Source: Paramicrosporidium saccamoebae KSL3 (taxonomy: Eukaryota > Fungi > Cryptomycota). Taken from it: a stretch of 26,118 nucleotides of DNA. Where the stretch lies: NCBI GenBank assembly GCA_002794465.1, contig MTSL01000006.1, forward strand, positions 1 through 26,118, read 5' to 3'. Below, piece by piece: positions 656 through 19,967 of this stretch (its first letter is position 1; every line of letters starts with the position of its first letter). The notes beneath the pieces were generated by a model. The model made no database searches and was not told the DNA's origin. It saw nothing but the letters and a program-made list of their open reading frames with translations. A program made the translations under genes and the position numbers.

Positions 656-1152
656 CGAGGTTACAAGTCAAGGCCCTATTGGAATCTCTGTCTCGTATCT
701 ATATACTATCACAATTAACAGCATCTTAAACAGCAGTTTTCATAGCAAGGAAGGACTTGATAATTTTCAGGATAACCTAATCTGTGTTCACAGTTCATAT
801 TTAGAAACTTTACCTATTACGCACTCATGGTGGGGTGCGTTGTATAGTGGTTCACTTGATTCTATAAGATGGAGTTACCATCAAGTCTTTGTAACCAGTG
901 GACTAAATAAGTGTCTCTTTCCGCCAATTATTGTTGTCACGAGAAGTTAGACGCAAGACACACGAAGCATACTATTAAACAAGTGCGAATCCACCCAGTT
1001 GAAACTGTTATAATGTCTTAAACTATTGTTCAGTATGGTCTCTTTATCGTCCAATAGTTGCCTTGTTTCACAAAAAGGCATCCAACATATTCATCAAGGA
1101 GTTGCTTCTATTGGACAGTAACAAATGTGGGCTACCCCGAATTCCCCACGCT

Positions 1153-1986
1153 ATGTTGTATCTCAGATTCAGGCCGTCTAAAGAGAGCGTGATCATCCCA
1201 AAGCTGGTGACATGCCTCAGTGTCGCGACGGATGCGTTCTTTATATTACTGATGGCATGGACAGTCGTCAATATGTTCTATCCATTCTGGGGTTGGGCCA
1301 TCTATCTTTCCACCTGGCTTGGCTTCTTTTCGCATATCCCTCTCTACTATCTAATCATGCATCTTAGCCTCCGTTCTTTCATGACTGCCGAATACCGATA
1401 CAATGACGTAAATGACACAGATGGCGGACGATTAAAGCATCTCGGATTTCTCTTTTCTGTTTGGTATCATCCCGATGCCTTGACACTTGGATATTATCAT
1501 GAAGACGACAAATTTGTCTGTCGGAAGAGACGATATGTCAGCCTCGGCTACGAAATAGCACTCAACAAGTGGCTGGGCTGGCCCATTGTCCTGATCACTG
1601 ATACCATCCCCTTCATACTATTAGCAGCAGTGATCAGTGCTGGCTACTTTCTTGGCATCGGCACTCTCGTATTCTATCTGATGGGTTCCGCTCTGGCATT
1701 GAATACGCTCACCATTTTCCGTCGCTTTGCAGAATTGTTCGAATGGGATGATGAAGTGTTCTTGGAAGGGAAGATGTATACCAGAAAGTCTGTTGGCATG
1801 GTGACATGCATATTAGAAAGACCTGACGGTGAATTGATGTTGACAATGACTGAAGTGGCGATATTCAGTCATTTTATTAAACGCAGATGGTTCAGGACAG
1901 CTATGACAAAATGCACGTGCTGTCTTTCAATGGTGGAGCCAGTTAGACAGGCTTACTATCCAATTTACCAACAGCAATTTGTATAG
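1153..1986 (+). CDS. Cassette gene A, copy 1: 277-aa predicted ~4-TM membrane protein of unknown function
   Basis: First ATG shared with copy 2 (MLYLRFRPSKES). Two pairs of hydrophobic stretches. About 75% identical to copy 2 by manual count, with no indels. Confidence 0.85.
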   Translation: MLYLRFRPSKESVIIPKLVTCLSVATDAFFILLMAWTVVNMFYPFWGWAIYLSTWLGFFSHIPLYYLIMHLSLRSFMTAEYRYNDVNDTDGGRLKHLGFLFSVWYHPDALTLGYYHEDDKFVCRKRRYVSLGYEIALNKWLGWPIVLITDTIPFILLAAVISAGYFLGIGTLVFYLMGSALALNTLTIFRRFAELFEWDDEVFLEGKMYTRKSVGMVTCILERPDGELMLTMTEVAIFSHFIKRRWFRTAMTKCTCCLSMVEPVRQAYYPIYQQQFV

Positions 1987-2388
1987 CGCGTTTTAGGGTG
2001 TCGTGTAGAGAATGATTGACCACAAAGCACCGAGGTTCAAGATGTTTTCCATCGTATTCAGCAATATTCAAGCAATCATCCTAGACAATAAACTTTTTAC
2101 GTAGACAGTATTGTTTGTTAGATGGAATAATCCCCGAAACTTACAAGTTGCTCATTTCCCGATGAAGCGCCTCTTGAAGCCAAAGGAGGGTTCCAAATTC
2201 CCTCCAGATCATTCGCCATGATTTTTATAAGGCTACTAATATAGATGCTGCAAATCTCGAGTCACCAAATATCACGAAACTCGTGTAAATTTCCTAAAGA
2301 AACAACAGCACATGCATCTCAACTAAATGTTTGCAATAAGATTTATATAACATGGGAATTCGGCGTAACTACATACACTAAAGGCTTA

Positions 2389-3310
2389 TTATTTAACCCA
2401 CCTCTGCCTAGTCAGTTTGACTTTTTCTAAGCATTCAAACTGACTAGGCAGAGATGAATTCATCCAGTCGTTTCCAAGCTCTTGAAGCCCAAAGCCTTCC
2501 TCGGGAGGGCTTCGTAGCCCTAATTTCATTATACGAAACATACAAACCTTGCAACGACGGATCCAACAAAATATAGACCGCAGATGCCGGTGGGCTACAT
2601 TTAAGGGACCCGATCCCTTGGACGGTCGGCATCCGCATAATCGGCACTCTTCGACCTCTCCGTCCGAACGCCAGAGCCCTAGTTCTAACCCACTTGCGGG
2701 CTTGTATCCATTGCTAGGGGGCTTCTCGCGTGTGCTCCCGGATCTGGATAGAAAGGTCTTAATCCAGACATCCTTGGGATGCTCCCACAGTAGGAAGAGG
2801 CAGAGGATCTTGGCACGTCGGGCCCCCAGGCGATGCAGCGCATTTAGCGTAAAGTTTTGCCGCATCTCCTTGCTGAGCGCGTCAACTTTCCATGCAAGGT
2901 GCACAGCGTCCACGAGTCTCTTATTGTTACAGCCGATGAGAGACTCTAAGATGATGGCACAGTTTACGTACCATCCTCGACACTTTGCGACTTCCGATGG
3001 GTTTACAAAGAGCAGTAATCTTGCCATCTGTCGGAAGCCGCTCATGCCTAGGCATTCCGCCTTGAACTCCTCATGGCTGAGCCCTTTGCGCTCAGCTGTC
3101 ATCGTGGCGAAGACTCTTATCAATGCAGTGATGGGTAGTTCTGGGATGCAAAATGCATCGAGCTTGCCATAGTCGCGGAGTGCAATCTAAATAGATAAGA
3201 ATAGTCAAATCAACTGCAAGAGTTTGCTGAGAGCCCCCGCCTTCAATGGTTCCCTCGGGTAGCCACGTCCCGAAGGCCTTCCTCCGGTTCCATTCCTGGT
3301 AGCGTTTCGT
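2389..3310 (-). pseudogene. Cassette gene B, copy 1: 5'-truncated or decayed paralog (could still yield a 237-aa product from ATG 3102)
   Basis: Homologous to B2 from RYQEWNRRKAFGTWLPEGTIEG onward, with a putative 28-nt intron at 3187-3214. Lacks the ATG-led TM N-terminus and carries an 18-nt deletion (TVTYLD). Keeps CRLC-x27-CKVC. Confidence 0.6.
2402..2453. other. Perfect 19-bp inverted repeat (hairpin, 14-nt loop) at the 3' end of gene B1
   Basis: ctctgcctagtcagtttga (2402-2420) / tcaaactgactaggcagag (2435-2453). An imperfect homolog lies at ~7123-7176. Confidence 0.9.
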
Positions 3311-3797
3311 TTGGATGGGGAGTCCTGGGCAGAGTCTCTGTATTTGTAGGTAGAATCCGGAAAAGTCTAAATTGACTTTTTTCGCCCGCCAATACAATTG
3401 GGCGTATGACAGTCGTATGCTAGTGAGGTGCAATAGCAACTCTTTCCATAAGCTTGCATGCAATACTATGAGAGTGATCCCTAAATTTTATGAATAGTTT
3501 GGAATAGATCATGGCGACTAGCTAACATTAATGAGCCGGGTTTAGTGGTAAATACTATATCAACGACACTTGTAACCACCGACCTGTATAGATCCAGAGA
3601 TGGTACTCTCAATGGCTTTAAACAAGTGCAAATCCACACAACTAACGCTGCTGTAATGCATCAAATTATCGGCCAATCCGGGTGCTTTTATCAGCCAATG
3701 ATTGCGTCGTTCCATAAATAGCTCCCAACGTATTACCCCGAGGGGTAGTTTCTATTGGACAGCCTCATATGTAAGGCTGCTCCGAATTACCCACTCG

Positions 3798-4631
3798 ATG
3801 CTGTATCTCAGATTCAGGCCGTCCAAAGAGAGCGTGATCGTCCCAAAACTGGTGACATATCTCAGTGTCGCTACTGATGCGTTTTTTCTATTACTGATGG
3901 CTTGGACAATTGTAAATCTGTGCTATCCATTCTGGGGCTGGGCCATTTATCTTTCCATCTGGCTTGGCTTCTTCTCACATATCCCTCTATACCATCTCAA
4001 CGAGCACATTAGCCTCCGTTCTTTCATGACTACTGAGTATCGCTACAATGATATGAACTTTACAGATGACGGACGACTAAAGCATCTCGGATTCTTCTTC
4101 TCTGTTTGGCATCATCCCGATGCTTTGACACTCGGGCGTTACCACAAAGACGACAAGTTTTTTTGCCGAAAGGAACGATATGTCAGTCTTGGCTCTGAAA
4201 TAGCGCTCAACAAATGGGTGGGCTGGCCCATCGTCCTGGCCACCGATGCAATCCCACTCATAGTGCTAGCGGCAGTGTTCAGTGTCGGCTACTTTCGCGG
4301 CGTCGGTACCATTGTATTCTATCTGATGGGTTTCGCTCTGTCAGTGAATCTACTCACTGTTGTTACTTATCTAAGAGATTTTTTCAAGTGGGATGACGAA
4401 GTGTTCCTAGAGGGAAAAATGTACGCCAAAAAATCATTTGGACTTGTGACATGCATACTGGAAGGATCGGATGGTGAGTTAGTCTTGACAATGACTGAAA
4501 TAGCAAGATTTAGCCACTTTGTTAAACTTGAATGGTTTGAGTCAGCTGCTTTGACATGCAAGTGTTGCCTTTCAATGATGGAGCCTGTTAGGCTGGCTTA
4601 CTACCAAATGCATCAACAGCAATTGGTATAG
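3798..4631 (+). CDS. Cassette gene A, copy 2: 277-aa predicted ~4-TM membrane protein of unknown function
   Basis: Same length as and collinear with A1, with an open frame despite ~25% amino-acid divergence. Confidence 0.85.
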   Translation: MLYLRFRPSKESVIVPKLVTYLSVATDAFFLLLMAWTIVNLCYPFWGWAIYLSIWLGFFSHIPLYHLNEHISLRSFMTTEYRYNDMNFTDDGRLKHLGFFFSVWHHPDALTLGRYHKDDKFFCRKERYVSLGSEIALNKWVGWPIVLATDAIPLIVLAAVFSVGYFRGVGTIVFYLMGFALSVNLLTVVTYLRDFFKWDDEVFLEGKMYAKKSFGLVTCILEGSDGELVLTMTEIARFSHFVKLEWFESAALTCKCCLSMMEPVRLAYYQMHQQQLV

Positions 4632-5114
4632 CGCGTTATAGTGTATCATGTAGAGACAATGGTTACCTACAGGGCAGCAATATTCTGACTGTATTACACC
4701 ATGTTCAACAATACCCAAGCAGGAGTTGTTATCAATAAACTCTATATGTAGACATAATTGTTTGTTATATGTGATAAACTATAAGGCCTACAAGTCGCTC
4801 ACTTCCCGGTGAAGGCGCTTCTTGAGGCCTAAATGGCAAAGATCCAAATGTCTCAAACAACAGTTGATGGCTCATACAATATTTTTAGTGTAACTAATAC
4901 AAAACTCGGGCCGTCAGGTTTCACAGAACCTATCTGCAACTTCCAATAAGGCCATCAGCACGGCATTTTTCTGTAAGATCTTAGTAATGCAATGCATAGT
5001 ATTTGGGCACGGCCATTGCTGCATGCAAAAATCAGCCGAGTAATGTCTCTCTTATGTGTTAATCGGCTCGGCCAGTTAAACACAGGCATCTGCGTACACA
5101 AAATGGAGATTTAT

Positions 5115-6265
5115 TCAGTTATCTCCAAAGAGCTCTTGGAGCCCAAAGTCCTCTTGGAACGGGTCTTCTTGAGGCTCAAAGTCCTCGTCAGGGACTTCCC
5201 GCAGCCCTATCTTTATGGTACGGCGCCTGCAGACCCTGCAACGACGGGCCCAAGAGAACACGGACCGCAGACTCGCGTATATTAGACTTCTAGGGCCCGA
5301 TCCAGTGGAAGGTCGGTACCCGCAGAATCTGCATTCTTCAATATTTCTATTTGCCCGCCAGGATTTGGGTTTCAGGTCTTTGGGGTGACTCTGCTCGGCG
5401 GTTGGGAGCTTCTCCCATCCATCTTCAAGTGGCATTAGAGCCTTCATAACCCATGGGTCATTGACGTGCTCTTTCACCAAAAGTAGCCGAAGGGTCTTGG
5501 CGCGTCTGCTCCCCAGGCGATGCAACGCATTGAGTGTAAAGTCATGCTGCATCTCCTTGCCGAGCACGCCAGCCTGCCATGCGAGGCGCACAGCGTCTAT
5601 TAGTTTGTCTTTCTCAGAACCTATGAGGAGCTCCAAGACGGAAGCACATTTTACGTACCATCCTCGGCACTTTGCAGCTTCCGATGGGTTTACAAACAGT
5701 AGCAATCCCGCCATCTGTCGGAAGCCGCTCATGTCTAGGTACGTAACTGTGCCTAGGCATTCCGCCTTGAACTCCTCATGGCTGAGCCCTTTACGCTCAG
5801 CTGTCATGCTGGCAAAGACTCTTTTCAACGCCACGATGGGCAGCTCTGATATGCAAGATGCATCGAGCTCTCCGTAATCGCGGATTGCGATCTAAACAGA
5901 TAAGAATAGTCGAAACAACTGCATACCGCAAGAGTTTGCTGGAAGCCCTCGCCTTCAATGGTTCCCTCGGGTAGCCACATCCCAAGGGCCCGGGTCCGAT
6001 TCCGCTCCTGGTGACGGTCCCAAGCATACCGGCACGGTAGTAGTGCTAGGAAAAATACAATCACGCCTGCACCAACACCATATGCCCAGCTTAGACTTCC
6101 CGCGGCTGCCACTGTACCACAGAACACTGTCACAATTGACAAAACCAGGCCAGCCAAGGTTCCCCACGGATGGGTACGGTTATATTTCTTCCAAGCCAGG
6201 ACAAAGGCACCCAAACCGCCTGCTGCTGCTGCTACAACACCGAAGATCATCTGCACGTTCTCCAT
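5115..6265 (-). CDS. Cassette gene B, copy 2: 371-aa protein with N-terminal TM helices and a C-terminal CxxC-x27-CxxC motif; exons 6265-5927 and 5891-5115
   Basis: A 35-nt GT-AG intron (5892-5926, gtatgcagttgtttcgactattcttatctgtttag) joins ORF 5825..6265 in frame to ORF 5115..5834 (QQTLA|IAIRDYGELDASCISELPIVALKRVF). The intron position is conserved in all three copies. Confidence 0.8.
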
Positions 6266-6499
6266 CGTTTCTGGATGCTGTGTCGTGGGGGATGGTCGTA
6301 TTTATAGAAATAGCTACAATCTAAATTTAGCAACTTTGCTATCAGACATGATTGATCAACAAATATCCCACTGAGGGGATTGAGTTGATTGGCTAGTTGG
6401 GTAGTAAAAAAGTGAAGGCAGCGACTCTTTAGTTTTACAGCAAGGCCATATACAATGGGAACGAACGACCCTGATTACTATCAAAAGCCAATCAATACC

Positions 6500-6722
6500 G
6501 ACATTGACACTGTCATATTCTATCTAATGGGAGCATTGCTGCCAATGAATCTACTCACTGTTGCTATTAGTCTAAGAATTACTTAAGTGGGGAGGACAGC
6601 ATTCCTGGAGGGAAAATAGATGGTTTAGGACAGCGTTGGAATCGGCATGTACGTGATTGTGTTTAATGATGGAACCGGTTAGACTGGCTTATTATCAGAG
6701 TTATCAACAGCAATCTGTATAA
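6500..6722 (+). pseudogene. Cassette gene A, copy 3: C-terminal remnant
   Basis: Matches to VFYLMG...NLLTV, FLEGK and MMEPVRLAYYQ...QQ. The 5' part of the gene is missing and ~110-120 nt are deleted between FLEGK and RWFRTA. Confidence 0.85.
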
Positions 6723-7207
6723 CAATGCATTGTGCAGAGAATGATTGACTACAAAACATAACATTTTGGCTGCATTACGTCACGTTCAACAATACCCAAG
6801 CAGGAGTCGTTATCAGTAAACTCTATATGTAGACATTATTGTTTGTTATATCTGATAAACTCTAAGGCCTACAAGTCGCTCATTTCCCGGTGAAGGCGCT
6901 TCTTGAAGCCTGACTGGCAGAGATCCAGATCATTGGTCATACTCCTTACAAGGCTATTGCGTAGATGCTTCAAGTTCCGCGTCGTCAAAGATGGTACAGA
7001 ATTTGCGCAAATCCCCTATAAAAATACCAACACATACATCTCGACTAAAACTTTGCATTAAGATTCATAATTATGTGCATCCGGTGTAGCTACATATACT
7101 GAATAGCACATTACTTAATCCACCTCTGATTAGTTAGTTCGACTGTTATAAAAAAGTCGAGCTGACTGAGCAGAAGTGAATTTTTTAACGAGGTGAGGGA
7201 AATGGGA

Positions 7208-8371
7208 TTACGGGCATGGCGGTTGCCGCTCAATTTTCAATGCTTGAAGCTCAAAATCTTCGCTGCTCGCTACTGCAGTGGTATCCTGTATCGGCCCATT
7301 CTCCGGCCCCTCGGAAATGGGATGCCTGCATAGTCCCCGATCCATGGTACGGTACCCGTACGTTTTGCAACGGCGGGTGCAGCGAAACACGTACCTCTGT
7401 GACTTGTGGATCACTTCGGAGGTCTAAATCCGCATAAGCGGCACTCCTCGAGATCCCCTTGCAAGTACCAGCGCTCCACATTCAACTCTTCAATGCGCGC
7501 AAAATGGCCACTTGGGGTGGCATCGGTGCGTCTCTGGATGCGGACAAGTAGGCCCTAATCCAAGCATCCTCGGCGTGCTCTTCCTTCAATAGATACCAAA
7601 GATGACGTCTTTTGGTATTCCCCAGGCGATGCATTGCATTGAGTGTCAGATCGTGTTTCATCGCCTGGGAGAGCACGCTGGTCTTCCAGATGAGATGCAC
7701 CACGTTCACGAGATTGTCGGTATCAGATTCGACAAAAAGTCTCTAAATGCACGCGCATTTCACGTACCATCCTCGACACTCCGCAGCTTCCGATGGATTA
7801 ACAACAATCAACATTCCAGCCATCTGTTGGAAGCCGCTCATGTCTAGGCAGTTGAAAGCGCGGTGGCAGTACGTCTGAAACTCCGCCCAGCTCAGCCCCG
7901 AACGTTCGGCAAAAACCTTATGCAGAGAAGGAATGGGCAAATGCAAGACACAGGATGCATCGATCCCTCCGTAGCGGCGGAGTACGATTTACAGAGTCAA
8001 TGACAGTCGGCTTTTCTGTTTACCGAAGGAGCCTGAGCGAAGGTCGAGGCTTCAAGGTCACCCTCGGGCAACCGCACCCCGAGGGCTCGAGCCCGCCGCC
8101 GCTCTTGATGGCGGTCCCAGGCGTAACGGCACGGCAGCAGCAGGAGGATCAGGCCTGTCAACCCACCTCCAACACCGAATGGCCACGAGGTGCCTTCCTG
8201 CCGCCATTACCGTGCCACCGAACACGCCCATCGTGGCTAGCACTAGGCCAGCAATCATTCCCCAGGGGCGGGTCCGGTCCCATCCGACCCACGCCAAGAC
8301 GCAGGTACCAAGGCACCAAGGTCCCCGGTCACATCAGTGACTACTCCGACGATCGGAGACACGTTATTCAT
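7208..8371 (-). pseudogene. Cassette gene B, copy 3: pseudogene
   Basis: MNNVSPIVGVV start. Frameshifts in exon 1 and near the Cys motif, in-frame TAG at 7743-7745 aligned to Leu, and the 35-nt intron homolog (7989-8023) ends in AA instead of AG. Confidence 0.85.
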
Positions 8372-9520
8372 CTTCTTTGATACTGAACCCTGGACAGGAT
8401 CGCTGTATTTATAGGAATCGCTGCGCGTCCGCAGTAACCTTATTTTCAGCGAATATGATTGGCTAGAAATCCCACCCGAGCCTAAACTGCAGAATGGCAC
8501 GTCAACTTCCGCTAGAATCCGGATGCTACTAAGGATGCGATGGTCGTGATCTCTTCTGAAATAGCGGAAACATGTCATAAAGATCAGGCGCCGTCAATAG
8601 ACCAAGCTCGCCGGTGCCCGAAATGTCACTGTTTACAAATAACCATCAATCCGCGAGATGGCGCTTCAAACTCTTCAGAATAAACCATTTAGTAAACATG
8701 AATTCGAGTTGTTAGCGTTGATACAGTGCTTCAGATGTTCAGTCAGTTTATTTATGTCAACGAGTCAACTCTCGTCATTGTGTATGAATTCATCCTCTCT
8801 TCTCTTTAAAAGTAGTTCCTTCACAACAATGAGCAGTAAAATCGACTTTTTTCGAGAGTAGGACCTCCTAATTGCTGCAGCCGTATTTCGGGCTTTGTCT
8901 CTACTTTTGTCGGTCCAATTCGTACTTGTCCACTCGACTCAACGGTCGAGCGCCTTCCAATGAGCATTACGGTTGTTGAGTAACGCATTCTTAAAGCCTA
9001 GTGCTTCGGAAAGATGCGACTTTAGTCTGTGGTCCTGTCTCATGCAGCAAGTTTATTTCGGAGTTTGAATTTCAAAGTCAACACTCTTGGAGCAACTCAA
9101 ACGGGCGCTAGTTTCGACTCGTGACCACTAGGTATGGCTTTCCAGTTGGTCTGTGAATGACCCGTAAAAATTTTGGCACTTGAGAATTCCTAGTATGACC
9201 CATGGATTATAGCCACTACTGCGAGCACCAGAAATATTGCTTGACCATGTTCCTGTGGATTCAATGGATCGATTGTGCAGCTTAGCTGGCTTGTCTGTAC
9301 TGCGTATCGGATGGGCCGAATCGCTCCAAACTTGTCGAATCGGTTCACATCTGTGCTCTGTAGAGCTCACAGAAACAGTATACCCAACCATCAATAGCTT
9401 ATCCAGCTGATATGAACCGGTTCCTGCATAGGTTGTAATGCCTGGATACCATTTATCAACATTGCTGTGCAGTGCCCAGGCCTGTTGCTCACAAAAAACA
9501 GCTGCCACAGAGCTGTTATA
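8372..9520 (-). pseudogene. Probable decayed ~380-codon ORF of unknown family
   Basis: One minus frame (9508, 9043 and 8578 all in phase) has only 8 stops over ~379 codons, far fewer than the roughly 20 expected for non-coding DNA of this composition. The translation reads as protein-like. Confidence 0.4.
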
Positions 9521-9637: not shown

Positions 9638-10855
9638 TTATAATTCGTCGTTAAGAGAGTCTTCATCTTCCTCATCATGTTCTTCGCCCGAGTGAGTGTA
9701 TTCGCCATCAGAGGCATTCCCCAAATCCAAAACAATATTCTCCACCTGCGGTAGCGGTCGTTTTGCGAGTATTTGCATGAGAGACTCGGTGGCGTCGTCT
9801 TTTTGCGGCACAGGATGATAGGCAAACCGATGGGCCACCTTTTTCATGCGGGACCGCATACGTTCCTCCTCTGCCTGGGGGATTGCCTTGAGAATCTCCG
9901 TCAGACGACCTATATCCCGCTGCGGCACGCGTACTGTGAATTCGCGGAAATCAACAATGGTGCGGTTAAAGGCGACATCCCACTCATCGGCAATAATAAC
10001 GGGGATGGCACCTGCCTCAATGGCATCAAAGAGTCGGGGACTCCAATGGCTCCAGCCCAACGGACACAGGGCATAACGAGCATTAATGAGCTCATGCCAA
10101 TAAAATGCACTGTGTTCCGTTCGGATAAAGTAATGTGCAGGATCCTCCTTGCCGTACTTTAGGAGCCGCTGCCTGATTCCGAGACTGTACTCATACTCAT
10201 TGGTAATGGATCCCCTAAAGTAGGCAAAAATTGTGCGTTGGGCGGGACGGGGCAATGTCTCCACGTGGCGATATTCGCCCAATGGCGGGATGGAAATGTC
10301 CTTGTGGGGATCAAAGACCTGACGATGATCTTTGTGCGCCATGCCGAGTAGAGTCAGATGGATGCTAGAAGCCACCCGATTGCGTGCGACAGACTCGTCC
10401 TTTTCGCCCAGCACATGCACTCCCCAGTCCCAGCTGAATACGAACAGATGGTCCCGACCCTGTTTCCGCTGCCAGAAGGGATATTCTTCTTCTACATGAT
10501 CCAAGATGGCAGTTAGATACTCTGCAGTCTTTCCCCGACACACTTCTGGATCGTGGTCCACCTTGCACCGATGATAATAACAGGTGCTGTACTGCGGAAC
10601 CAAAAAATAGTCGGCCTGGGCCGCATCATGGAGGGTGGAGGCAGTTTGAACAAAGCGCGAGGCGGTTAACAAAGTGGGCAATGCAAGCTCGATGGCGTAA
10701 AAGTAGTGATGGCAAGAGGAATAGTCCATGTGATAATCACGATGGAGGAGTGTCTCGGGGATGGTGTAGATGTACACTTTTGGCATCGGAACGTCTTCTG
10801 TAGTCCACCATGTTGACACCAAAGGCAGCAATGCAGCAAAGCAGGCCAGTCTCAT
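9638..10855 (-). CDS. Exostosin-family (GT47) glycosyltransferase
   Basis: N-terminal signal or anchor; KVYIY, ADYFLVP, GRDHLF, FRGS and ALCPLGWSHWSPRLFDAIEAGAIPVII motifs typical of GT47; acidic tail ending NDEL. Confidence 0.88.
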   Translation of the reverse strand: MRLACFAALLPLVSTWWTTEDVPMPKVYIYTIPETLLHRDYHMDYSSCHHYFYAIELALPTLLTASRFVQTASTLHDAAQADYFLVPQYSTCYYHRCKVDHDPEVCRGKTAEYLTAILDHVEEEYPFWQRKQGRDHLFVFSWDWGVHVLGEKDESVARNRVASSIHLTLLGMAHKDHRQVFDPHKDISIPPLGEYRHVETLPRPAQRTIFAYFRGSITNEYEYSLGIRQRLLKYGKEDPAHYFIRTEHSAFYWHELINARYALCPLGWSHWSPRLFDAIEAGAIPVIIADEWDVAFNRTIVDFREFTVRVPQRDIGRLTEILKAIPQAEEERMRSRMKKVAHRFAYHPVPQKDDATESLMQILAKRPLPQVENIVLDLGNASDGEYTHSGEEHDEEDEDSLNDEL

Positions 10856-11085
10856 CGTCACCGTTCCCAGACAGTATTGCCCAATTCAGTCAAATTGCCG
10901 AGACAGTGTCAAGACGAATAGGTCCGTGTTTATTCAGTAGTAGGTTATAGACATAGTGATGGCCGTGGCTAATTAAGAGCGTATTGTTATTATAATGCCC
11001 CTCCCGCTCAAGAAAATGCTAGCATGAAAGGATTCGTGATTTAATAATAGATTATTCACAACCACCACAAATACTATAAGGATCA

Positions 11086-11448
11086 TCACAGTCCGCCACG
11101 GAGGGCAAGCACCAGATGCAACACACTCCCTCCCTCCACATTGTACTCACTCGCCGACTTTTCATCGCTCCTAGGACATTAACTACCCCCAAGACGGTAC
11201 ATTTGCTTTCCACCAAAGATGAGACGCTGCTGGGCAGGTGGAATGCCTTCCTTTTCCTCCACGCGTTCCTTGATTCGGCATATCTATGGTTAGAGAAAGG
11301 ACGGGGTTGGTGCCTTGTCCTTGGGTTCAATGTCTATTTCTATCTAATTATGAGGTTGTCTTGAGTGGGACAATGTACCTCTTTTCCCGTTAGGGTCTAT
11401 TGCATTAGCGTTTGGCACGAGTAAAAGTACCTTGACACGAATTTGCAT
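11086..11448 (-). CDS. NEDD8: NEDD8/Rub1 ubiquitin-like protein, 77 aa; exons 11448-11431, 11396-11379, 11343-11314, 11283-11201, 11170-11086
   Basis: Spliced translation [77 protein letters not shown]. Introns are 34, 35, 30 (GC-AG) and 30 nt. Confidence 0.95.
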
Positions 11449-13414: not shown

Positions 13415-16400
13415 CTAGTTGAGGAGATGGGCAAGATCAACAATATTGTTGACAGTGGATGGAATGGACAAGGCATCAAACTCGGCTTTAATGGCATCCA
13501 ACTTGCTGGCAGGAACGGCGGCTAGCCGAATTGCTCGGGTGGCGTCCTTGAGAACAAGCAGCAGTTCCTGGGCTGCCCGGGTCAGCTGAGGCACATCCAT
13601 GGCAAGCATACGGCTATTCCAACGTCTTTCCTCGTCAGAGCCCACAGATGGCAATCCACGTAGAGCAGTGCGACAGGCCGTTGCTACAATTCCTGCGGGA
13701 GTGGCACGTTCTGTGACGAATTGGAATTGCATTCCAGCCTGTGCAGTGCGTACAGCTTCATCGGTAATCACATTTGCTGGGGCGCTTAGTAGTTCCTCCA
13801 GAAGGGCAATAAATGTGGTAAAGGCTCTTACGGGATCCGAAGAGTCGTCCAAATGCGCCGTCAACAGTCCACTCCATACTGCCACAGAGATGGATGCACC
13901 ATATGCCAATCCTGCGCCTCGGATGCGTCTGAAAAGCGGTCCTTCCGTGTAACTGAGCAGCTGACAAAGCAGCGCCGTGCTGAGCAACCGATCAATAGTT
14001 GCATCATCATATTCGGCTGAACGGGGCAAAACGTCCAATGGTACACAAATCATCAAATAGGAAGAGGTAATGTCTGACATGGGAATCAGCTCAAATTCGC
14101 CTCCTTCGTTGACAGTTTCTCCCTCCAAGGTTCCCTGCTTTGGCAGACGATAGGGATCCTCCCAAAACGAATGCGAATCAGTGGATGTTGGCTGGCTTCC
14201 ATCTTCATTAGTTCCAAAATGAGTCAGCATGGGCGATTCTACCAGATGCTGTCGAAGCTGTTCCAAGCTAGAAATGACACTGTCTGGTTGCTCTTCGAGT
14301 TGTTCGCGCAATTGGACGAGGAACTTTGTTTGAGTGGCCATGCCAAGATGTTTCTCTATTGTCGGAGCCATTCTGCATCGAGGACGTTTGGCTGCCTTTG
14401 CGCACTCTCCCAACCGAGTGGTCAGTCGCATGTCTAGAACACTGTGAGCCTCTCCCCAAGTGTCCTTTAGTTGGCTGATGAGATTCTCCAGCACTTCAGC
14501 CACTCGATCCGCAGAAAAGACGGTACCGTGGAGGACCAACATGCACAGATTGCGCAGCTCCTCCAGCGTGTAGACAACCCGTCCGTGCAATGAAACAACG
14601 AAATGTGACTCAAAGTAGCCGCAAGAGAAAATGTCACTATCAAAGCCGACGGCTGTCTCAAAGGTGGAAAAGACTCCTGATAGCTCCTCAATAAGCTCCT
14701 GATACGAAATGGCCTCGGTGAGGAGGGGGGAGGGGAATTGTGTCAAAAGAGTGTCCGTGATTTCCAAATCACATTGGAAGAACAACTCTTGCAGCAGCAC
14801 CAAGTACGGCCACAAAGGCTCTGGGATGCACTTGGCAATGTCAAATGCAAGGGTCAGACGCTTCACTCCCGAGATGGGCAGAGAGACAATCTGTACGGCA
14901 GGAGATGGGCGATGGATGGTGCAGGGAATGGCAGCCAACTTTCCCGTGTCAAATGGCGCAATTTCCTGGGTGACCTGATACTCTTCCTCGGACAATTCGA
15001 TCACCGGAATGTTTTTCAACTGTTCCGTCTCCCACGTCTTGATGGACTCGTTCATAGTCCGAGAGGGCTTCATTCTCACCTCGGCTGGGGGAGGTCCCAG
15101 AAGGAAATGATCAATCAGTTCAGTCCAATAGGACAAGGGCTGTTGTGCCAACTCTTCCAAGTGCTGTGGCACCCGAGTAATGGATTCGCCATAACGACCA
15201 GGCTCTGTCGTCTTGGCAAATGGCCAGCGTGCACGCACAATTTCTGGCATACAATAGCCGGCGCAGAAGTCGTGTGGATCATCCTCCAAACTTTCCTGCA
15301 GCTTAATCTTTAGCGATTTTAGTGCCACCTTTCTGCGCTCTTCTAGCATTTCCTCATCAGTTCGGATAGCCCGCAACACTTCTTCCAACTCTGTCCACAA
15401 TACTCCCTCATCCAAATAGCACTTTCCGTCTTTGCCATCGGTTGGGATACCGCTAAAGATGATGGAAAGCATGGTCTGATGTGCCGGCTTTACTTCGTAG
15501 TCAATATCCGAGGCAATGGGGTCGCTGCGTTCCACAAAGTGCTGATATAAGGGACTGGCTGAAGTATCCTTGAGCATCCGAAGTAGGACGTGCAATGCCG
15601 TAATCGTGTACATATTGTCGCTGGTAGGCCCTGTCCATGCAAAACCCACCGAACCGAGCGATTCATCGTTGGCTGGGAAAGGAATAAGGACTGAGGATTG
15701 TTTTTCAATAACTGGCTCAGATGGTGGGTGAATAGGAGAGGGTGTGGGATAGAATTGGACAGAATCGAGCAGTTCCAAAAGTCCATCCAATTCGGCATCA
15801 AGTCCCGCTCCGCAGAGGACGACACAGACATTCTCCGGTCGATACCATCGGGCGTGGTAATCCTTAATTTCTTGCAGCGTCAACGTGGCAATGTCTTTAG
15901 TTCTTCCTCCGCACTCCCAACCATAAACCCCGCCTATTGTGCTACGTCGCAGTGCCAAGTCCAGCTGATCTTGTTCGCTCCATTCCCGACCAGCCATCTC
16001 ACAGTACACCACTCCACGTCCGCCTGCAGTTCCCCGATGGAAGACTTCCCGTCGAACCACCGTCTCGGAGAGGGTGGGACGGAAAATGTGGTCCAGGAAC
16101 ACGGGCAGCAAGCGAAGGAGTCCTGCCAGGGAAGAGGTCATTAGGGTGTAGCACGTGTGGTCGTCGCTTGTGTACGCATTAGTGCCCTGCGATTGACACA
16201 GTCCTGCGAGACGGTCAAGATAGCCACGTTCCGGATACGCCACCGAGCCACAAAAGATGAGATGTTCTAGTGTGTGAGGTAGCCCTTTATGGTCTTCCAC
16301 AAACGTCGGCACGGCGACATAGACTGCATACAGCGGACTGTCCACTGCACAGGTCACCAGTTCGAGCCCATTTGTGCATTTGTATGTGCTCACTCCCGTC

Positions 16401-16453
16401 TTTGGATAGTCCACTGCATCCAACACTGTCGAAAATACCTTACTTGGTGCCAT
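13415..16453 (-). CDS. M16 (insulinase/pitrilysin-like, probably M16C) zinc metallopeptidase, 1012 aa
   Basis: Inverted zinc motif GLPHTLEHLIFCGS, NAYTSDDHTCY, GVVYCEM, and C-terminal LFRRIRGAGLAYGA. Confidence 0.92.
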   Translation of the reverse strand: MAPSKVFSTVLDAVDYPKTGVSTYKCTNGLELVTCAVDSPLYAVYVAVPTFVEDHKGLPHTLEHLIFCGSVAYPERGYLDRLAGLCQSQGTNAYTSDDHTCYTLMTSSLAGLLRLLPVFLDHIFRPTLSETVVRREVFHRGTAGGRGVVYCEMAGREWSEQDQLDLALRRSTIGGVYGWECGGRTKDIATLTLQEIKDYHARWYRPENVCVVLCGAGLDAELDGLLELLDSVQFYPTPSPIHPPSEPVIEKQSSVLIPFPANDESLGSVGFAWTGPTSDNMYTITALHVLLRMLKDTSASPLYQHFVERSDPIASDIDYEVKPAHQTMLSIIFSGIPTDGKDGKCYLDEGVLWTELEEVLRAIRTDEEMLEERRKVALKSLKIKLQESLEDDPHDFCAGYCMPEIVRARWPFAKTTEPGRYGESITRVPQHLEELAQQPLSYWTELIDHFLLGPPPAEVRMKPSRTMNESIKTWETEQLKNIPVIELSEEEYQVTQEIAPFDTGKLAAIPCTIHRPSPAVQIVSLPISGVKRLTLAFDIAKCIPEPLWPYLVLLQELFFQCDLEITDTLLTQFPSPLLTEAISYQELIEELSGVFSTFETAVGFDSDIFSCGYFESHFVVSLHGRVVYTLEELRNLCMLVLHGTVFSADRVAEVLENLISQLKDTWGEAHSVLDMRLTTRLGECAKAAKRPRCRMAPTIEKHLGMATQTKFLVQLREQLEEQPDSVISSLEQLRQHLVESPMLTHFGTNEDGSQPTSTDSHSFWEDPYRLPKQGTLEGETVNEGGEFELIPMSDITSSYLMICVPLDVLPRSAEYDDATIDRLLSTALLCQLLSYTEGPLFRRIRGAGLAYGASISVAVWSGLLTAHLDDSSDPVRAFTTFIALLEELLSAPANVITDEAVRTAQAGMQFQFVTERATPAGIVATACRTALRGLPSVGSDEERRWNSRMLAMDVPQLTRAAQELLLVLKDATRAIRLAAVPASKLDAIKAEFDALSIPSTVNNIVDLAHLLN

Positions 16454-16625
16454 GTCCTTAACAATTAATCTGTTTTTATCTTTTGTGCGTGGTGTAATAA
16501 TAAGAAAGGGCTTGTGAGGCTAAAAGTAGTGACCTTGTAAAAACATGTCCATAGACCCGCGCGGGTCCGTGCATTACTGTACCATCTTGTAAATTTGCCG
16601 GTATGGCCACTTTGCTGGATAAACA

Positions 16626-18716
16626 TCATTTATTTACCGTGGTAACTGGATCATCTGGAATCGTGTCAGGTGAGCCGGGTAATAGTGGAGAATCCTCCAA
16701 TGCACCCTTGTCATTCGCATCGTTGCCGTTTGTATAGCTTGGTCCAGCTACGTCGCTCTTGTCATCGAAATGATCTGTTCCCTTCAGTCCATCCGTATCG
16801 TTTTCGGCACTGCTACCGGATATCATAACTGGGATTGACGGTGGTCGGATGGGCATTACTGGACGAGTTCCCAGACCAAACTTGAACACTGCCAGCAATA
16901 ATGTAGTGGCACCAAAGATGATTACCGTTGCCACTGTCACTGTCCAGGGAGGCAACTCTCTAAACGTCCTCCTCATCCTCTCTACTCGCTGCTGGATGGC
17001 GAGTAGACGCAATGCAAGATAGCATGGTAGCCACGCTTCAGGCTCCTCGTTCGATTTTCCCAGAGTGGCTGCCTGTTCATAGTACCGACGGGCCATGTTG
17101 AGATCTAGCGGCACTCCAATTCCATACTGATGGAGATAGGCCAGATTGAAGGCGGCTTGTGGGCTGCGCTTCTCAATTGCCTTGTGGTAGTAAGCAGCCG
17201 CACTGATGGGATCTGGCTGTTCAATGCCCCAACCTTTGTACATGTAATCGCCAAGTGCCACCAATGATGGCGCTTCGCCATTGGAAGCTGCAGACAGAGA
17301 CCACCACACAAGTGCCCGTCTCCTCAATGACTCTATCTCTTCCTGATTATTCTTGGATCGCGCCATATGGTCCAACAAAAAGGCGGCGTTGTATTGAGCC
17401 GCGTCATTCCCCTGTTCAGCAATGTACAAAAAACGCGACAGGGCTGCACCAAAACGACCTCGTGTAAATAAATCATTCGCTTCTTCAACTAGCGAGACAC
17501 TTGGATGCTTCTCCAATACGTTGAGGAGCAGCGTTTTGGCCAGATTGCAGGTCACATCCCGGTGCATGTTCAGCTTGGCCAGCTCATATCCCGCCAGCAC
17601 ATATCCACCTCGCAGAGCTGCAATATATGCCCCAAATATCGTGTCATCATGACGTACCGGATCAATCTCTGTATAAACTCGGCCCAAGTTGTAGTACGCC
17701 TCAGAGTGGTCCAAATCGGCGGCCTGTTTGAAATATTTGGCCGCCTCGTCGAGATCCTTCATTACCTCAACGCCCTTCCAGTATAGCAGACCCATTCCAT
17801 TGAGGGCGATGGCATTCTTTTCCTTGCTGGCCCGACGAAACTTGTGATATGCCTCCCGCTTGTTTGGCTTTTCCAGTCCTTCGCCATAATAGTCCATTTG
17901 GCCCAGATAGCCCGTCGCTGCCGCATTTCCTAGATCGGCAGCCTTGGTGAAATAATCCCGGGCAAGGCCCATGTCGCGATCAACTCCCCCAACTCCAAGA
18001 TAGAATACCTGTCCCAAGAAGAGCAATGCTGTGGCATCTCCCGAATCGGCATTGTATTGGTAAAAGTCAACGACGTCCCTCGAAGTGCTGCTTTTTTCGC
18101 TCCTGTTGTGTGACAGACGCACAGCCTTGGGAAAGCTGGTTCTCCGCTCACTCTCCACTTCCTTGGCCATCTCGGTGGCCACTGAGAAATAATAGTCCCT
18201 CGCCTTTAGACAACTTTTTGTCACTTGTGCGCCCGCTGAATGCATCCATCCCAGCGCCATTAATGCCCCCGTGTGTTTCTTCTCTGCCGCCATTGCATAA
18301 TATGCGAGCTTGTGAGGGATACTTCGTGTCTTTCCCCCAAGGCCATTGGAGTGGAACAGACCGAGGAGGAAATGGCACTCTGGGTCATTACAGTTGCTCA
18401 AATACGAGGCACATTTCCCATAGTCAGGCTCAAAGTTGAGTCTTCCAAAATAATATAGATCGGCGAGATGGACAGCTGCCGCATCATGGCCCAACTGTAG
18501 TGCATGGTCGAGCTTTGCAACTGCCGAATTAATGCCAGAGCCGTCCGGATGACTTAGCAGGGCAACACCTTCCTCGTAGAGCTGCTTTGCTTGTAATGTC
18601 AATTCAGTCGACGTTACAATAACGTTGCCTGCGACGGGCGACACTACAGTGTCAATTTCTCCACTCTCTGCCAGAGCTGGTAGGAGAAGAGTCAACAACT
18701 GCCAAGAAAGCCGCAT
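16626..18716 (-). CDS. HRD3: Hrd3/SEL1L-like ERAD lectin adaptor (Sel1-like repeats)
   Basis: Signal peptide, multiple SLR repeats, DVVDFYQYNADSGD...LGQVFYLG motif, AQYNAAFLLD, and a TM segment near the C-terminus. Confidence 0.88.
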   Translation of the reverse strand: MRLSWQLLTLLLPALAESGEIDTVVSPVAGNVIVTSTELTLQAKQLYEEGVALLSHPDGSGINSAVAKLDHALQLGHDAAAVHLADLYYFGRLNFEPDYGKCASYLSNCNDPECHFLLGLFHSNGLGGKTRSIPHKLAYYAMAAEKKHTGALMALGWMHSAGAQVTKSCLKARDYYFSVATEMAKEVESERRTSFPKAVRLSHNRSEKSSTSRDVVDFYQYNADSGDATALLFLGQVFYLGVGGVDRDMGLARDYFTKAADLGNAAATGYLGQMDYYGEGLEKPNKREAYHKFRRASKEKNAIALNGMGLLYWKGVEVMKDLDEAAKYFKQAADLDHSEAYYNLGRVYTEIDPVRHDDTIFGAYIAALRGGYVLAGYELAKLNMHRDVTCNLAKTLLLNVLEKHPSVSLVEEANDLFTRGRFGAALSRFLYIAEQGNDAAQYNAAFLLDHMARSKNNQEEIESLRRRALVWWSLSAASNGEAPSLVALGDYMYKGWGIEQPDPISAAAYYHKAIEKRSPQAAFNLAYLHQYGIGVPLDLNMARRYYEQAATLGKSNEEPEAWLPCYLALRLLAIQQRVERMRRTFRELPPWTVTVATVIIFGATTLLLAVFKFGLGTRPVMPIRPPSIPVMISGSSAENDTDGLKGTDHFDDKSDVAGPSYTNGNDANDKGALEDSPLLPGSPDTIPDDPVTTVNK

Positions 18717-18975
18717 GGATGACTTTACTATTATTATTTTATTTTACGACTGATACAAAAAGGCTAATTCTGCAATTGTCACGACAGTAGTGGAACGGGC
18801 GAGATTGTTACTTGCAATAACGACACTTTATTGGGGGTTTTCTCAACCATCAATGCTCAGCGGCATCAGATACCCCTTATCATAGCCAATCTTTGGTCAA
18901 CGTGATACACTCGCAAACTTTACTCCGCCTCGACAATTATAAGAACAGTGTATTCCTTCACTATGACATTGCAAA

Positions 18976-19851
18976 ATGAGATTGAATCTTTTCAATGTCT
19001 TCTTGTTCTTCACTTGTGGCTCTGGGATGTGGCCGTTTGGGCCCGAGGCGGAGAACAATTATGCCATGCCACTTGCAACTGCGGCTGAACCGAGCTACAC
19101 AGTCTATATGGAATCGGCCAGCGCCAGCTTGGCTGCCGTTGCGACATCCATGCCGGAAATGGAAAACCCGTGTCCCAAATCTGAACCACCAGTCTACGTT
19201 CCTCCGCCAATGGCCACCTCTGAGACATGCACCTGTCCTGAACAACCCACCACCAGTGTGATTCCCACGTCTTGTACATGTCCCAAAGCTCTTGCCTGGC
19301 CCGTTCCTGCCGTTCATGCTCCTGTGAATCTGCCGCCTTGCGTTAATTTGACCGCGCCGGCATATTGCAACATCACGACCGCCTTCCGCCTGGCCCCTGT
19401 GCAGGATGAATGGTGGCAGGCCCAACAATTCTGTCTCTCTCGTCGTCCAGGTGTGTATTGCTACGTTCCGGTGGGATGCACAGATTGTTTCCCAACCGTC
19501 ATGCTGAGTTGTCCAGATGTCGTGTTTTTGGCTTGCAAGGAGGGCTTTGTATGTACTGGAGATGGATGTCGGGCCATGGTTGATCTGCTCCCTCTTGCAG
19601 CCAGGAATTACGGCATTGGAGTCATTGAGCAAGATGGACGGAGGGGATTCTCTGTACAAGTTGGACCGGGACAAGTGGAACGTTTTGTTCCCAAAAAGTG
19701 TCGTGGTCCCATGCCCCTCGCCATGGAGCAATGCATCCACAACAAAACTATGACGAGGACAATTGATCCAATGGATGTGACAGACGACTATTACACGCGC
19801 AGTTGGCAAATTCCCACGCCCACTGGAACGACCATGTGCGATGTCTTTTAA
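18976..19851 (+). CDS. Secreted Cys/Pro/Thr-rich protein of unknown function, 291 aa
   Basis: Signal-peptide-like N-terminus, about 19 Cys, two TCTCP/SCTCP motifs and a Pro-rich linker. Confidence 0.75.
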   Translation: MRLNLFNVFLFFTCGSGMWPFGPEAENNYAMPLATAAEPSYTVYMESASASLAAVATSMPEMENPCPKSEPPVYVPPPMATSETCTCPEQPTTSVIPTSCTCPKALAWPVPAVHAPVNLPPCVNLTAPAYCNITTAFRLAPVQDEWWQAQQFCLSRRPGVYCYVPVGCTDCFPTVMLSCPDVVFLACKEGFVCTGDGCRAMVDLLPLAARNYGIGVIEQDGRRGFSVQVGPGQVERFVPKKCRGPMPLAMEQCIHNKTMTRTIDPMDVTDDYYTRSWQIPTPTGTTMCDVF

Positions 19852-19967
19852 GACTCTTTGAATAAATCGTTTTGCCATTGAAGATTGTAAGGTTAGAGTA
19901 AAAGGCCCTTTATGACATCCCTATGTTGCGTAGTAGGGATGATACCATGTATCTTGTCAGGCGGGAA

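Follow-up and report, generated by a model that had tools for sequence, protein, structure and literature searches.

A tandemly triplicated, convergent pair of orphan membrane-protein genes evolving by birth and death in Paramicrosporidium saccamoebae

Paramicrosporidium saccamoebae is an intranuclear parasite of amoebae that stands close to the microsporidia, and the stretch of DNA analysed here, referred to as the window, is the whole of contig MTSL01000006.1 from strain KSL3 (26,118 nt; assembly GCA_002794465.1). Between its housekeeping genes, positions 975-8470 hold one unit in three tandem copies, arranged as direct repeats and each composed, in order, of an A promoter, gene A, a 3′ spacer, a convergent gene B and the B promoter. 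It is this unit and not the single gene that is duplicated, both in tandem and to other loci; the copies then decay by deletion and frameshift, the survivors are under purifying selection, and the pairing of A with B has survived at least one speciation as well as the division of the family into two old branches, or subfamilies. As judged from sequence searches, the unit appears to be confined to Paramicrosporidium and its uncultured relatives. The interpretation that we favour, and to which we give about an even chance of being right, is that A and B are membrane proteins, specific to this lineage, that interact as partner subunits of one complex and evolve as a pair by birth and death.

A preliminary description of this DNA had proposed that two unrelated orphan genes were triplicated together, tail to tail, and the three direct-repeat units bear this out, neither gene having a significant match to any known family. 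Successive units start about 2645-2712 nt apart at the first step and about 2090-2200 nt apart at the second, and no inverted repeats were found in the array. Units 1 and 2 share 65-88% DNA identity from 975/3618 to about 3300/6010, and units 2 and 3 share 55-74% over the surviving part of unit 3. Since the copies have diverged by 20-40% in DNA, an assembly artefact, which the preliminary description had named as a danger to its proposal, is ruled out. Reading frames confirm the states that it had assigned to the copies: both genes are intact in unit 2, A alone is intact in unit 1, where B is deleted at its 5′ side, and both genes of unit 3 are broken, so that intact, deleted and frameshifted units together agree with its claim that copies are born and decay.

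Linkage, shared descent and selection

The same convergent pair is found at two other P. saccamoebae loci and on three environmental contigs from uncultured relatives. The tblastn check of co-occurrence that had been proposed at the outset recovered it on every retrieved contig that was long enough, the shorter contigs ending before a partner gene could appear. One of the P. saccamoebae loci, L002 (MTSL01000035.1), carries B4 at 10001-11160 (+) and A4 at 12315-11467 (-), with a decayed B fragment upstream. The other, L007 (MTSL01000146.1), is an array in the order A(-), B(+), A(-), B(+), A(-), in which the A genes at 9628-8786, 12593-11781 and 15000-14212 (-) are intact, B5 occupies 10001-11189 (+), and the second B is internally deleted and frameshifted. 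The environmental contigs are L001/L009 and L008. Scans for more A/B loci in metagenome contigs returned none.

If A and B were duplicated together, their divergences should rise and fall together. Across 15 comparisons among six linked pairs, the identities of A and of B between units correlate with r=0.93, B always diverging faster, and this correlation of distances implies that the pair duplicates as a unit, as the preliminary description had supposed of two linked, co-duplicating genes. Both genes are represented in each of two old subfamilies, one comprising the copies in the window, L002 and L008 and the other those in L007 and L001, and across the two A is 44-58% identical and B 29-37%; copies at different loci are 30-68% identical in protein. 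The flanking housekeeping genes were never co-duplicated with the unit.

An exhaustive profile search for B gave 56 cluster representatives, and all 20 of those whose source was looked up come from P. saccamoebae or metagenomes. Ten members are annotated in P. saccamoebae on at least seven contigs: PSACC_00057, PSACC_00329 and PSACC_02139, which correspond to B2, B4 and B5, and the seven paralogs PSACC_00201, 00203, 00204, 00957, 00971, 01203 and 01209, whose contigs lay outside the linkage check. A database search with A gave only six protein matches, all metagenomic. Nothing significant was obtained for A, B or 24 B-family members with Pfam (E<=0.1-1), or for either family with NCBIfam and PDB sequence profiles, and scans of IMG/VR found no viral relatives.

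Selection was assessed as the ratio of non-synonymous to synonymous substitution rates (dN/dS) by NG86, with local maxima taken over 60 codons. The ratio is 0.18 for A1/A2, 0.18-0.22 for A1 or A2 against A4, 0.36 for B1/B2 and 0.26 for B2/B4; values for B span 0.21-0.36, and local values in its C-terminal half reach 0.8. The ratios point to purifying and not diversifying selection on both genes, looser on B, and no whole-gene positive selection was detected by NG86 in either. The suggestion that A1 and A2, which differ at about 25% of residues with neither an indel nor a stop codon, are held open by selection is thus upheld, and in simulations of random substitution open reading frames (ORFs) of such length remained open in only 0.9-3.5% of trials. 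Neither diversification by selection nor a ratio near 1, the value that, joined to a lack of expression, the preliminary description had held would count against it, is what the overall range of 0.18-0.36 indicates. With graded tandem and dispersed paralogs, pseudogenes and purifying selection, the A/B family has, on sequence grounds, the make-up of a birth-and-death multigene family.

Each gene also appears to be transcribed in its own right. In all loci and species the A genes carry CCAAT and TATAAATAGCC boxes together with CAGGAGTCACTCCTATTGGAC, a motif about 57 nt ahead of the ATG, and all B genes carry CCAATCA followed by TTCTATAAATAC about 40 nt ahead of the ATG, so CCAAT/TATA promoters have been kept across paralogs and species. 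An AATAAA lies near the stop codon of each gene and, given these separate signals, the convergent transcripts of A and B probably do not overlap. GC content at third codon positions is 0.48-0.58 in A and B against 0.46-0.56 in neighbouring genes, and in both respects A and B look like independently transcribed genes of native base composition.

Architecture and fate of the individual copies

The two intact A genes of the window, A1 (1153-1986, +) and A2 (3798-4631, +), are intronless, encode 277 aa with about four transmembrane (TM) helices and a C-terminal CxCC, as first described, and share 75% protein and 79% DNA identity without an indel. CxCC is present in most A copies, A4 carrying CxxC instead. 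Hydropathy places two hydrophobic hairpins at residues ~19-68 and ~139-190, separated by a loop of about 70 residues and followed by a tail of about 87 residues that contains the CxCC. Under the positive-inside rule the N-terminus, loop and tail are all predicted to be cytoplasmic, and the only parts predicted to face outward are a CYPFWGW stretch and a six-residue turn. In eight A sequences the Y, P, F and both W of CYPFWGW are invariant, and the C and G vary. An AlphaFold model built from eight sequences is poor, with a predicted local distance difference test (pLDDT) score of 46. Two hydrophobic hairpins, a hydrophilic loop of about 70 residues and a C-terminal tail are also the layout of reticulon-homology proteins. 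A resembles these in layout only: the Pfam Reticulon model did not match any of eight A members at E<=1, and each hydrophobic region of A could accommodate two full TM helices.

In A1, promoter and 5′ leader (975-1152, +) include, besides a CCAAT box, the motif GGAGTTGCTTCTATTGGAC and a TATA box degraded to CACAAAAAGG; homologous DNA occurs at 3618-3794 and, upstream of A genes, in L002, L004, L007 and L008. The corresponding region of A2 (3618-3797, +) contains CCAAT, CATAAATAGC and TTCTATTGGAC. The AATAAA of A1 lies in the unit 1 spacer between the two 3′ ends (1987-2388). Both A1 (CACAAAAAGG, 1040-1060) and B1 (TACAAATAC, 3330-3345) have TATA boxes that deviate from TATAAATA, the consensus of the family; expression may be weaker in unit 1 than in unit 2. 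The third copy, A3 (~6500-6721, +), is a pseudogene remnant of the last third only, with an internal deletion and stop codons; its promoter is gone, and so are the first ~168 codons.

Downstream of A2, a tract of the 3′ untranslated region at 4679-4849 (+) is 89-93% identical to its partner at 6760-6930 (+) in unit 3. The identity of this 171-nt tract stands out against 55-74% in the neighbouring coding DNA and about 60-72% at the same place in unit 1, and a recent gene conversion is the most likely explanation, to judge from these identities.

Neither intact A gene of the window is in the GenBank annotation, and the same is true of all seven A copies that were examined; the unannotated intact genes are these two, A4 in L002 and the three in L007. 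Repeats were masked with a RepeatScout library before genes were called in the P. saccamoebae genome (PMC5701793), and masking at that stage may have hidden the multi-copy A family.

B2 (5115-6265, -; ATG at 6265, stop at 5115) was described as a 371-aa protein with N-terminal TM helices and a CxxC-x27-CxxC motif, and it is open at that length once a 35-nt GT..AG intron (5926-5892) is removed. Exon 1 (6265-5927) encodes three TM helices, and exon 2 (5891-5115) encodes the helical domain and the CxxC-x27-CxxC. The promoter (6266-6400, -) has CCAATCA and then TTCTATAAATAC about 40 nt before the ATG. From N- to C-terminus the layout of B is three TM helices, assigned by hydropathy, a basic stretch, the helical domain and the cysteine motif; the large domain is predicted to be cytoplasmic, which would leave nearly all the mass of both A and B on the cytoplasmic side. 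At least 90% of 24 family sequences retain the counterparts of C300/C303 and C331/C334 of B2, and the four cysteines resemble a zinc-ribbon motif, for which no consistent Pfam match was obtained and in whose region the AlphaFold model scores below 50 pLDDT. The model of the soluble domain as a whole scores 57 and its helical core alone 60-87. A Foldseek search of this model against PDB, as the preliminary description had proposed for B, returned only generic helical-repeat matches (best E=0.36), so its orphan status stands.

The B2 intron is credible on two counts. An intron of similar size occurs at an identical codon in other copies (35 nt in B4 and in B8 of L008 as in B2, 34 nt in B5, 28 nt in B1), the peptide being conserved on both sides of it in B4, B5 and B8, and the fumarase gene of the same window needs a 28-nt intron at 494-521 (GTACAT...TTGTAG), the removal of which restores the conserved GYDNAAK. 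Very short introns thus seem normal in this genome. B2 matches PSACC_00057 at 100%, but this GenBank model is mis-spliced and only 256 aa long. Indeed, all three public models open to comparison with the DNA, PSACC_00057 (5115-6265), PSACC_00329 (L002 10001-11160) and PSACC_02139 (L007 10001-11189), use other splice sites and miss the 34-35-nt intron; each loses conserved peptide by mis-splicing, and PSACC_02139 loses a TM helix as well.

B1 (2389-3304, -) is a deletion derivative, comprising exon 2 (3186-2389), a 28-nt intron (3214-3187) and an exon-1 remnant (3304-3215). It lacks the first ~83 codons, every TM helix and any in-frame ATG ahead of the intron, is open over 295 codons, and has lost its stop codon, which adds a C-terminal extension of 24 aa; GenBank covers it with a 158-aa piece only. 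A promoter relic (~3305-3400, -) with CCAAT and TACAAATAC, resembling the DNA just ahead of a B copy in L002 and the B promoter consensus, is joined directly to codon ~84. Because promoter-like DNA still abuts this codon, an internal deletion of about 250 nt must have taken the ATG and the three TM helices, and a truncation of B1 by a duplication boundary is rejected. Under random substitution at half the observed divergence a B1-like frame survives in 0.9% of trials, and on this evidence either the deletion would be recent or a shorter soluble product would still be in use, for example from the first in-frame Met past the intron. Polarised substitutions, counted against saturated outgroups as a check for faster decay of B1, are similar in B1 (31 non-synonymous, 18 synonymous) and B2 (26 and 12). 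Broken B copies (B1 and B6) tend to lose the 5′ or TM part. Two near-perfect hairpins also lie within decaying B copies, one at 2399-2456 in the C-terminal extension of B1 (22-nt arms, 14-nt loop) and the other at 9335-9441 of L002 in the B fragment (37-nt arms).

B3 (7208-8371, -) is a pseudogene with several frameshifts and stop codons, equidistant from B2 (51%) and B4 (50%). Its promoter (8372-8470, -) has CCAATCA and CCTATAAATAC, and within it 8386-8433 is 90% identical to the B4 promoter of L002. A GenBank model of 141 aa at 7955-8380 (+) runs antisense to the 5′ part of this pseudogene and is probably not a real gene.

Upstream of B3 lies a conserved block of about 790 nt (8583-9370) that is 65-70% identical to 856-1595 of L008, where its counterpart forms the spacer of a divergently oriented A/B pair. 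Its conservation is close to that of the coding DNA, no counterpart stands beside B1 or B2, and its membership in the unit is uncertain. A hidden third gene was considered and rejected, since every frame is broken by indels whose lengths are not divisible by three and mismatches lack a 3-nt period. The block thus looks non-coding; it might act as a regulatory region or give rise to a long non-coding RNA.

What holds the pair together

In the interpretation that we favour, each unit would consist of two convergent, independently transcribed genes, each with its own CCAAT/TATA promoter and AATAAA. A would span the membrane with about four TM helices and have its loop and its C-terminal domain in the cytoplasm, and B would use its three N-terminal TM helices to anchor a cytoplasmic helical domain with the zinc-ribbon-like motif. 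The two would face each other through TM helices and cytoplasmic domains in one complex that may serve a parasite-specific membrane function, and since co-adapting partners would work best when inherited together, their linkage would persist. Several points weigh against this. The structure models are poor for both proteins. Copy numbers are unequal, which a strict 1:1 complex does not predict: there is one intact B for one to three intact A per array, and A5 in L007 has no convergent partner. The P. saccamoebae genome is 76% genic (PMC5701793), and in so compact a genome neighbours can be co-duplicated passively. Finally, the linkage check covered the contigs of three of the ten annotated B members of this genome.

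Some of these points can be turned into an explanation of their own, namely that A and B are functionally uncoupled genes that happened to be neighbours at the first segmental duplication and were carried along together by later short ones. Gene density makes this plausible, as do the separate promoter and poly(A) signal of each gene, transcripts that probably do not overlap, and the unequal numbers of intact A and B. What makes it unlikely, in our judgement, is persistence. The orientation of the pair does not change among three loci of this genome and three environmental contigs, which together span both subfamilies, and over the time implied by A identities of 44-58% and B identities of 29-37% passive linkage should have broken somewhere; nor should the housekeeping genes on either side have been spared every duplication.

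A selfish toxin-antidote system would account for the linkage differently: one protein, for example the four-TM A, would be a membrane poison and the other would neutralise it, such that non-carriers would not survive meiosis or spore formation, and arrays would grow as the driver duplicates. The closest architectural parallel is peel-1/zeel-1, in which the product of peel-1 is a novel toxin with four TM passes and the adjacent zeel-1, from an expanded family, encodes an N-terminal TM domain and a soluble domain (PMC3144186). As in that system, A and B are adjacent, tightly linked genes without homologs of known function, one a small four-pass membrane protein and the other joining N-terminal TM helices to a larger soluble domain within a lineage-specific, expanded family with tandem copies. 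A pair of unrelated orphans that is duplicated only as a pair and turns over by birth and death would suit a driver; so would a probably diploid organism with a full set of meiosis genes (PMC5701793), and the loss of N-terminal parts from B1 and the broken B of L007 beside an intact partner A. The differences are substantial, however. No sequence relationship to peel-1/zeel-1 was shown, those genes run in the same direction whereas A and B converge, ZEEL-1 has a ZYG-11-like soluble domain (leucine-rich repeats) where B has a small helical domain with four cysteines, and A and B are both multi-copy, old and under purifying selection. Their dN/dS lies far below 1, no Pfam similarity links them to any known driver family, and a pair kept in two old subfamilies and across species is better explained by an ordinary cellular function, although old drivers exist. 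The likeness, known here from the genes alone, is thus one of architecture; by analogy a toxin-antidote role is conceivable, and taking everything together we regard such a role as improbable.

A related proposal would make A/B a poison-antidote or immunity-type module of an early-diverging fungal parasite, with one membrane protein damaging any cell without the matching partner, whose arrays store spare partner genes and N-terminally disabled B copies that could be recombined into the one active B of the array. Each of the three arrays (window, L002 and L007) does have exactly one intact B (B2, B4 and B5, respectively) and between one and three intact A. Such a reservoir would be in keeping with that single B, with a B1 frame that is still open despite its missing N-terminal part and with the probable conversion tract shared by units 2 and 3; even so, we think it doubtful that this is how the arrays work.

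It is similarly doubtful that A and B are host-facing effectors or surface variants, a family of variable membrane proteins meeting the amoeba nucleus. Restriction to one parasite lineage with at least ten B members, tandem arrays with pseudogenes, and the faster C-terminal half of B, where local dN/dS climbs to 0.8, are all features that such a family might have. The predicted external loops are only about 5-7 residues long, however, and the outward CYPFWGW of A is almost invariant, which argues against an arms race, whether of a recognition receptor or of the host-interaction effector pair that had been suggested in the preliminary description. Whole genes give no sign of positive selection, the zinc-ribbon-like cysteines suggest a reducing, cytoplasmic location, and neither gene matches the Pfam models of microsporidian families. 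Lineage-specific, expanded families that evolve by birth and death occur in microsporidia and their relatives; the subtelomeric InterB genes of Encephalitozoon are one example, and Nematocida has other such families, of large size. The A/B family resembles them in belonging to a single parasite lineage, in its unknown function, in its tandem arrays of intact genes and pseudogenes and in its poor annotation, but those are families of single genes and this is a fixed convergent pair of unrelated ones.

The analogy with the allorecognition loci het-c/pin-c and doc-1/doc-2, also drawn in the preliminary description, extends to linked gene pairs with diverging alleles or paralogs and fails elsewhere: a Pfam search of the A and B members (E<=0.1-1) found no HET, NACHT, WD40 or other known incompatibility domain, the genes are under purifying selection, almost no external surface is predicted, and the copies form paralog arrays and not allelic haplotypes. 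Lastly, it is very improbable that a transposon carries the cassette as its cargo or coding part, for although the cassette is multi-copy and dispersed over contigs, and its A genes may have gone unannotated through RepeatScout masking (PMC5701793), the units of the window, L002 and L007 are not bounded by terminal inverted or long terminal repeats (what repeats directly is the unit itself), no transposase, integrase or reverse-transcriptase Pfam domain occurs in A or B, viral relatives were not found, and copies at different loci are divergent enough to be old paralogs under purifying selection and not recent insertions.

Surrounding genes and wider meaning

The array is flanked by a fumarase gene (1-655) and an exostosin-type glycosyltransferase gene (9638-10861), beyond which lie RasGEF, M16 peptidase, Sel1-repeat and BRCT genes. 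Scanning the whole window for Rfam families and tRNAs gave no matches. The M16 peptidase ORF (1012 aa) and the Sel1-repeat ORF (696 aa), at 13415-18716 (-), are separate in the window and about 170 nt apart, and the public annotation fuses them into one protein of 1727 aa. Further on, two long ORFs on opposite strands overlap almost completely, at 18961-19878 (-, 305 aa) and 18976-19851 (+, 291 aa).

The unannotated A genes and the mis-spliced models of B2, B4 and B5 mean that gene counts, and estimates of lineage-specific gene gain, are affected for this genome. Rozellomycota and microsporidia are known for gene loss, and A/B is a case of the opposite, in which a lineage gained a new pair of proteins, preserved the linkage of their genes and amplified the pair repeatedly. 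A co-duplicating pair of orphan membrane proteins offers a testable lead to parasite-specific membrane biology, and is at the same time a candidate selfish two-gene element.

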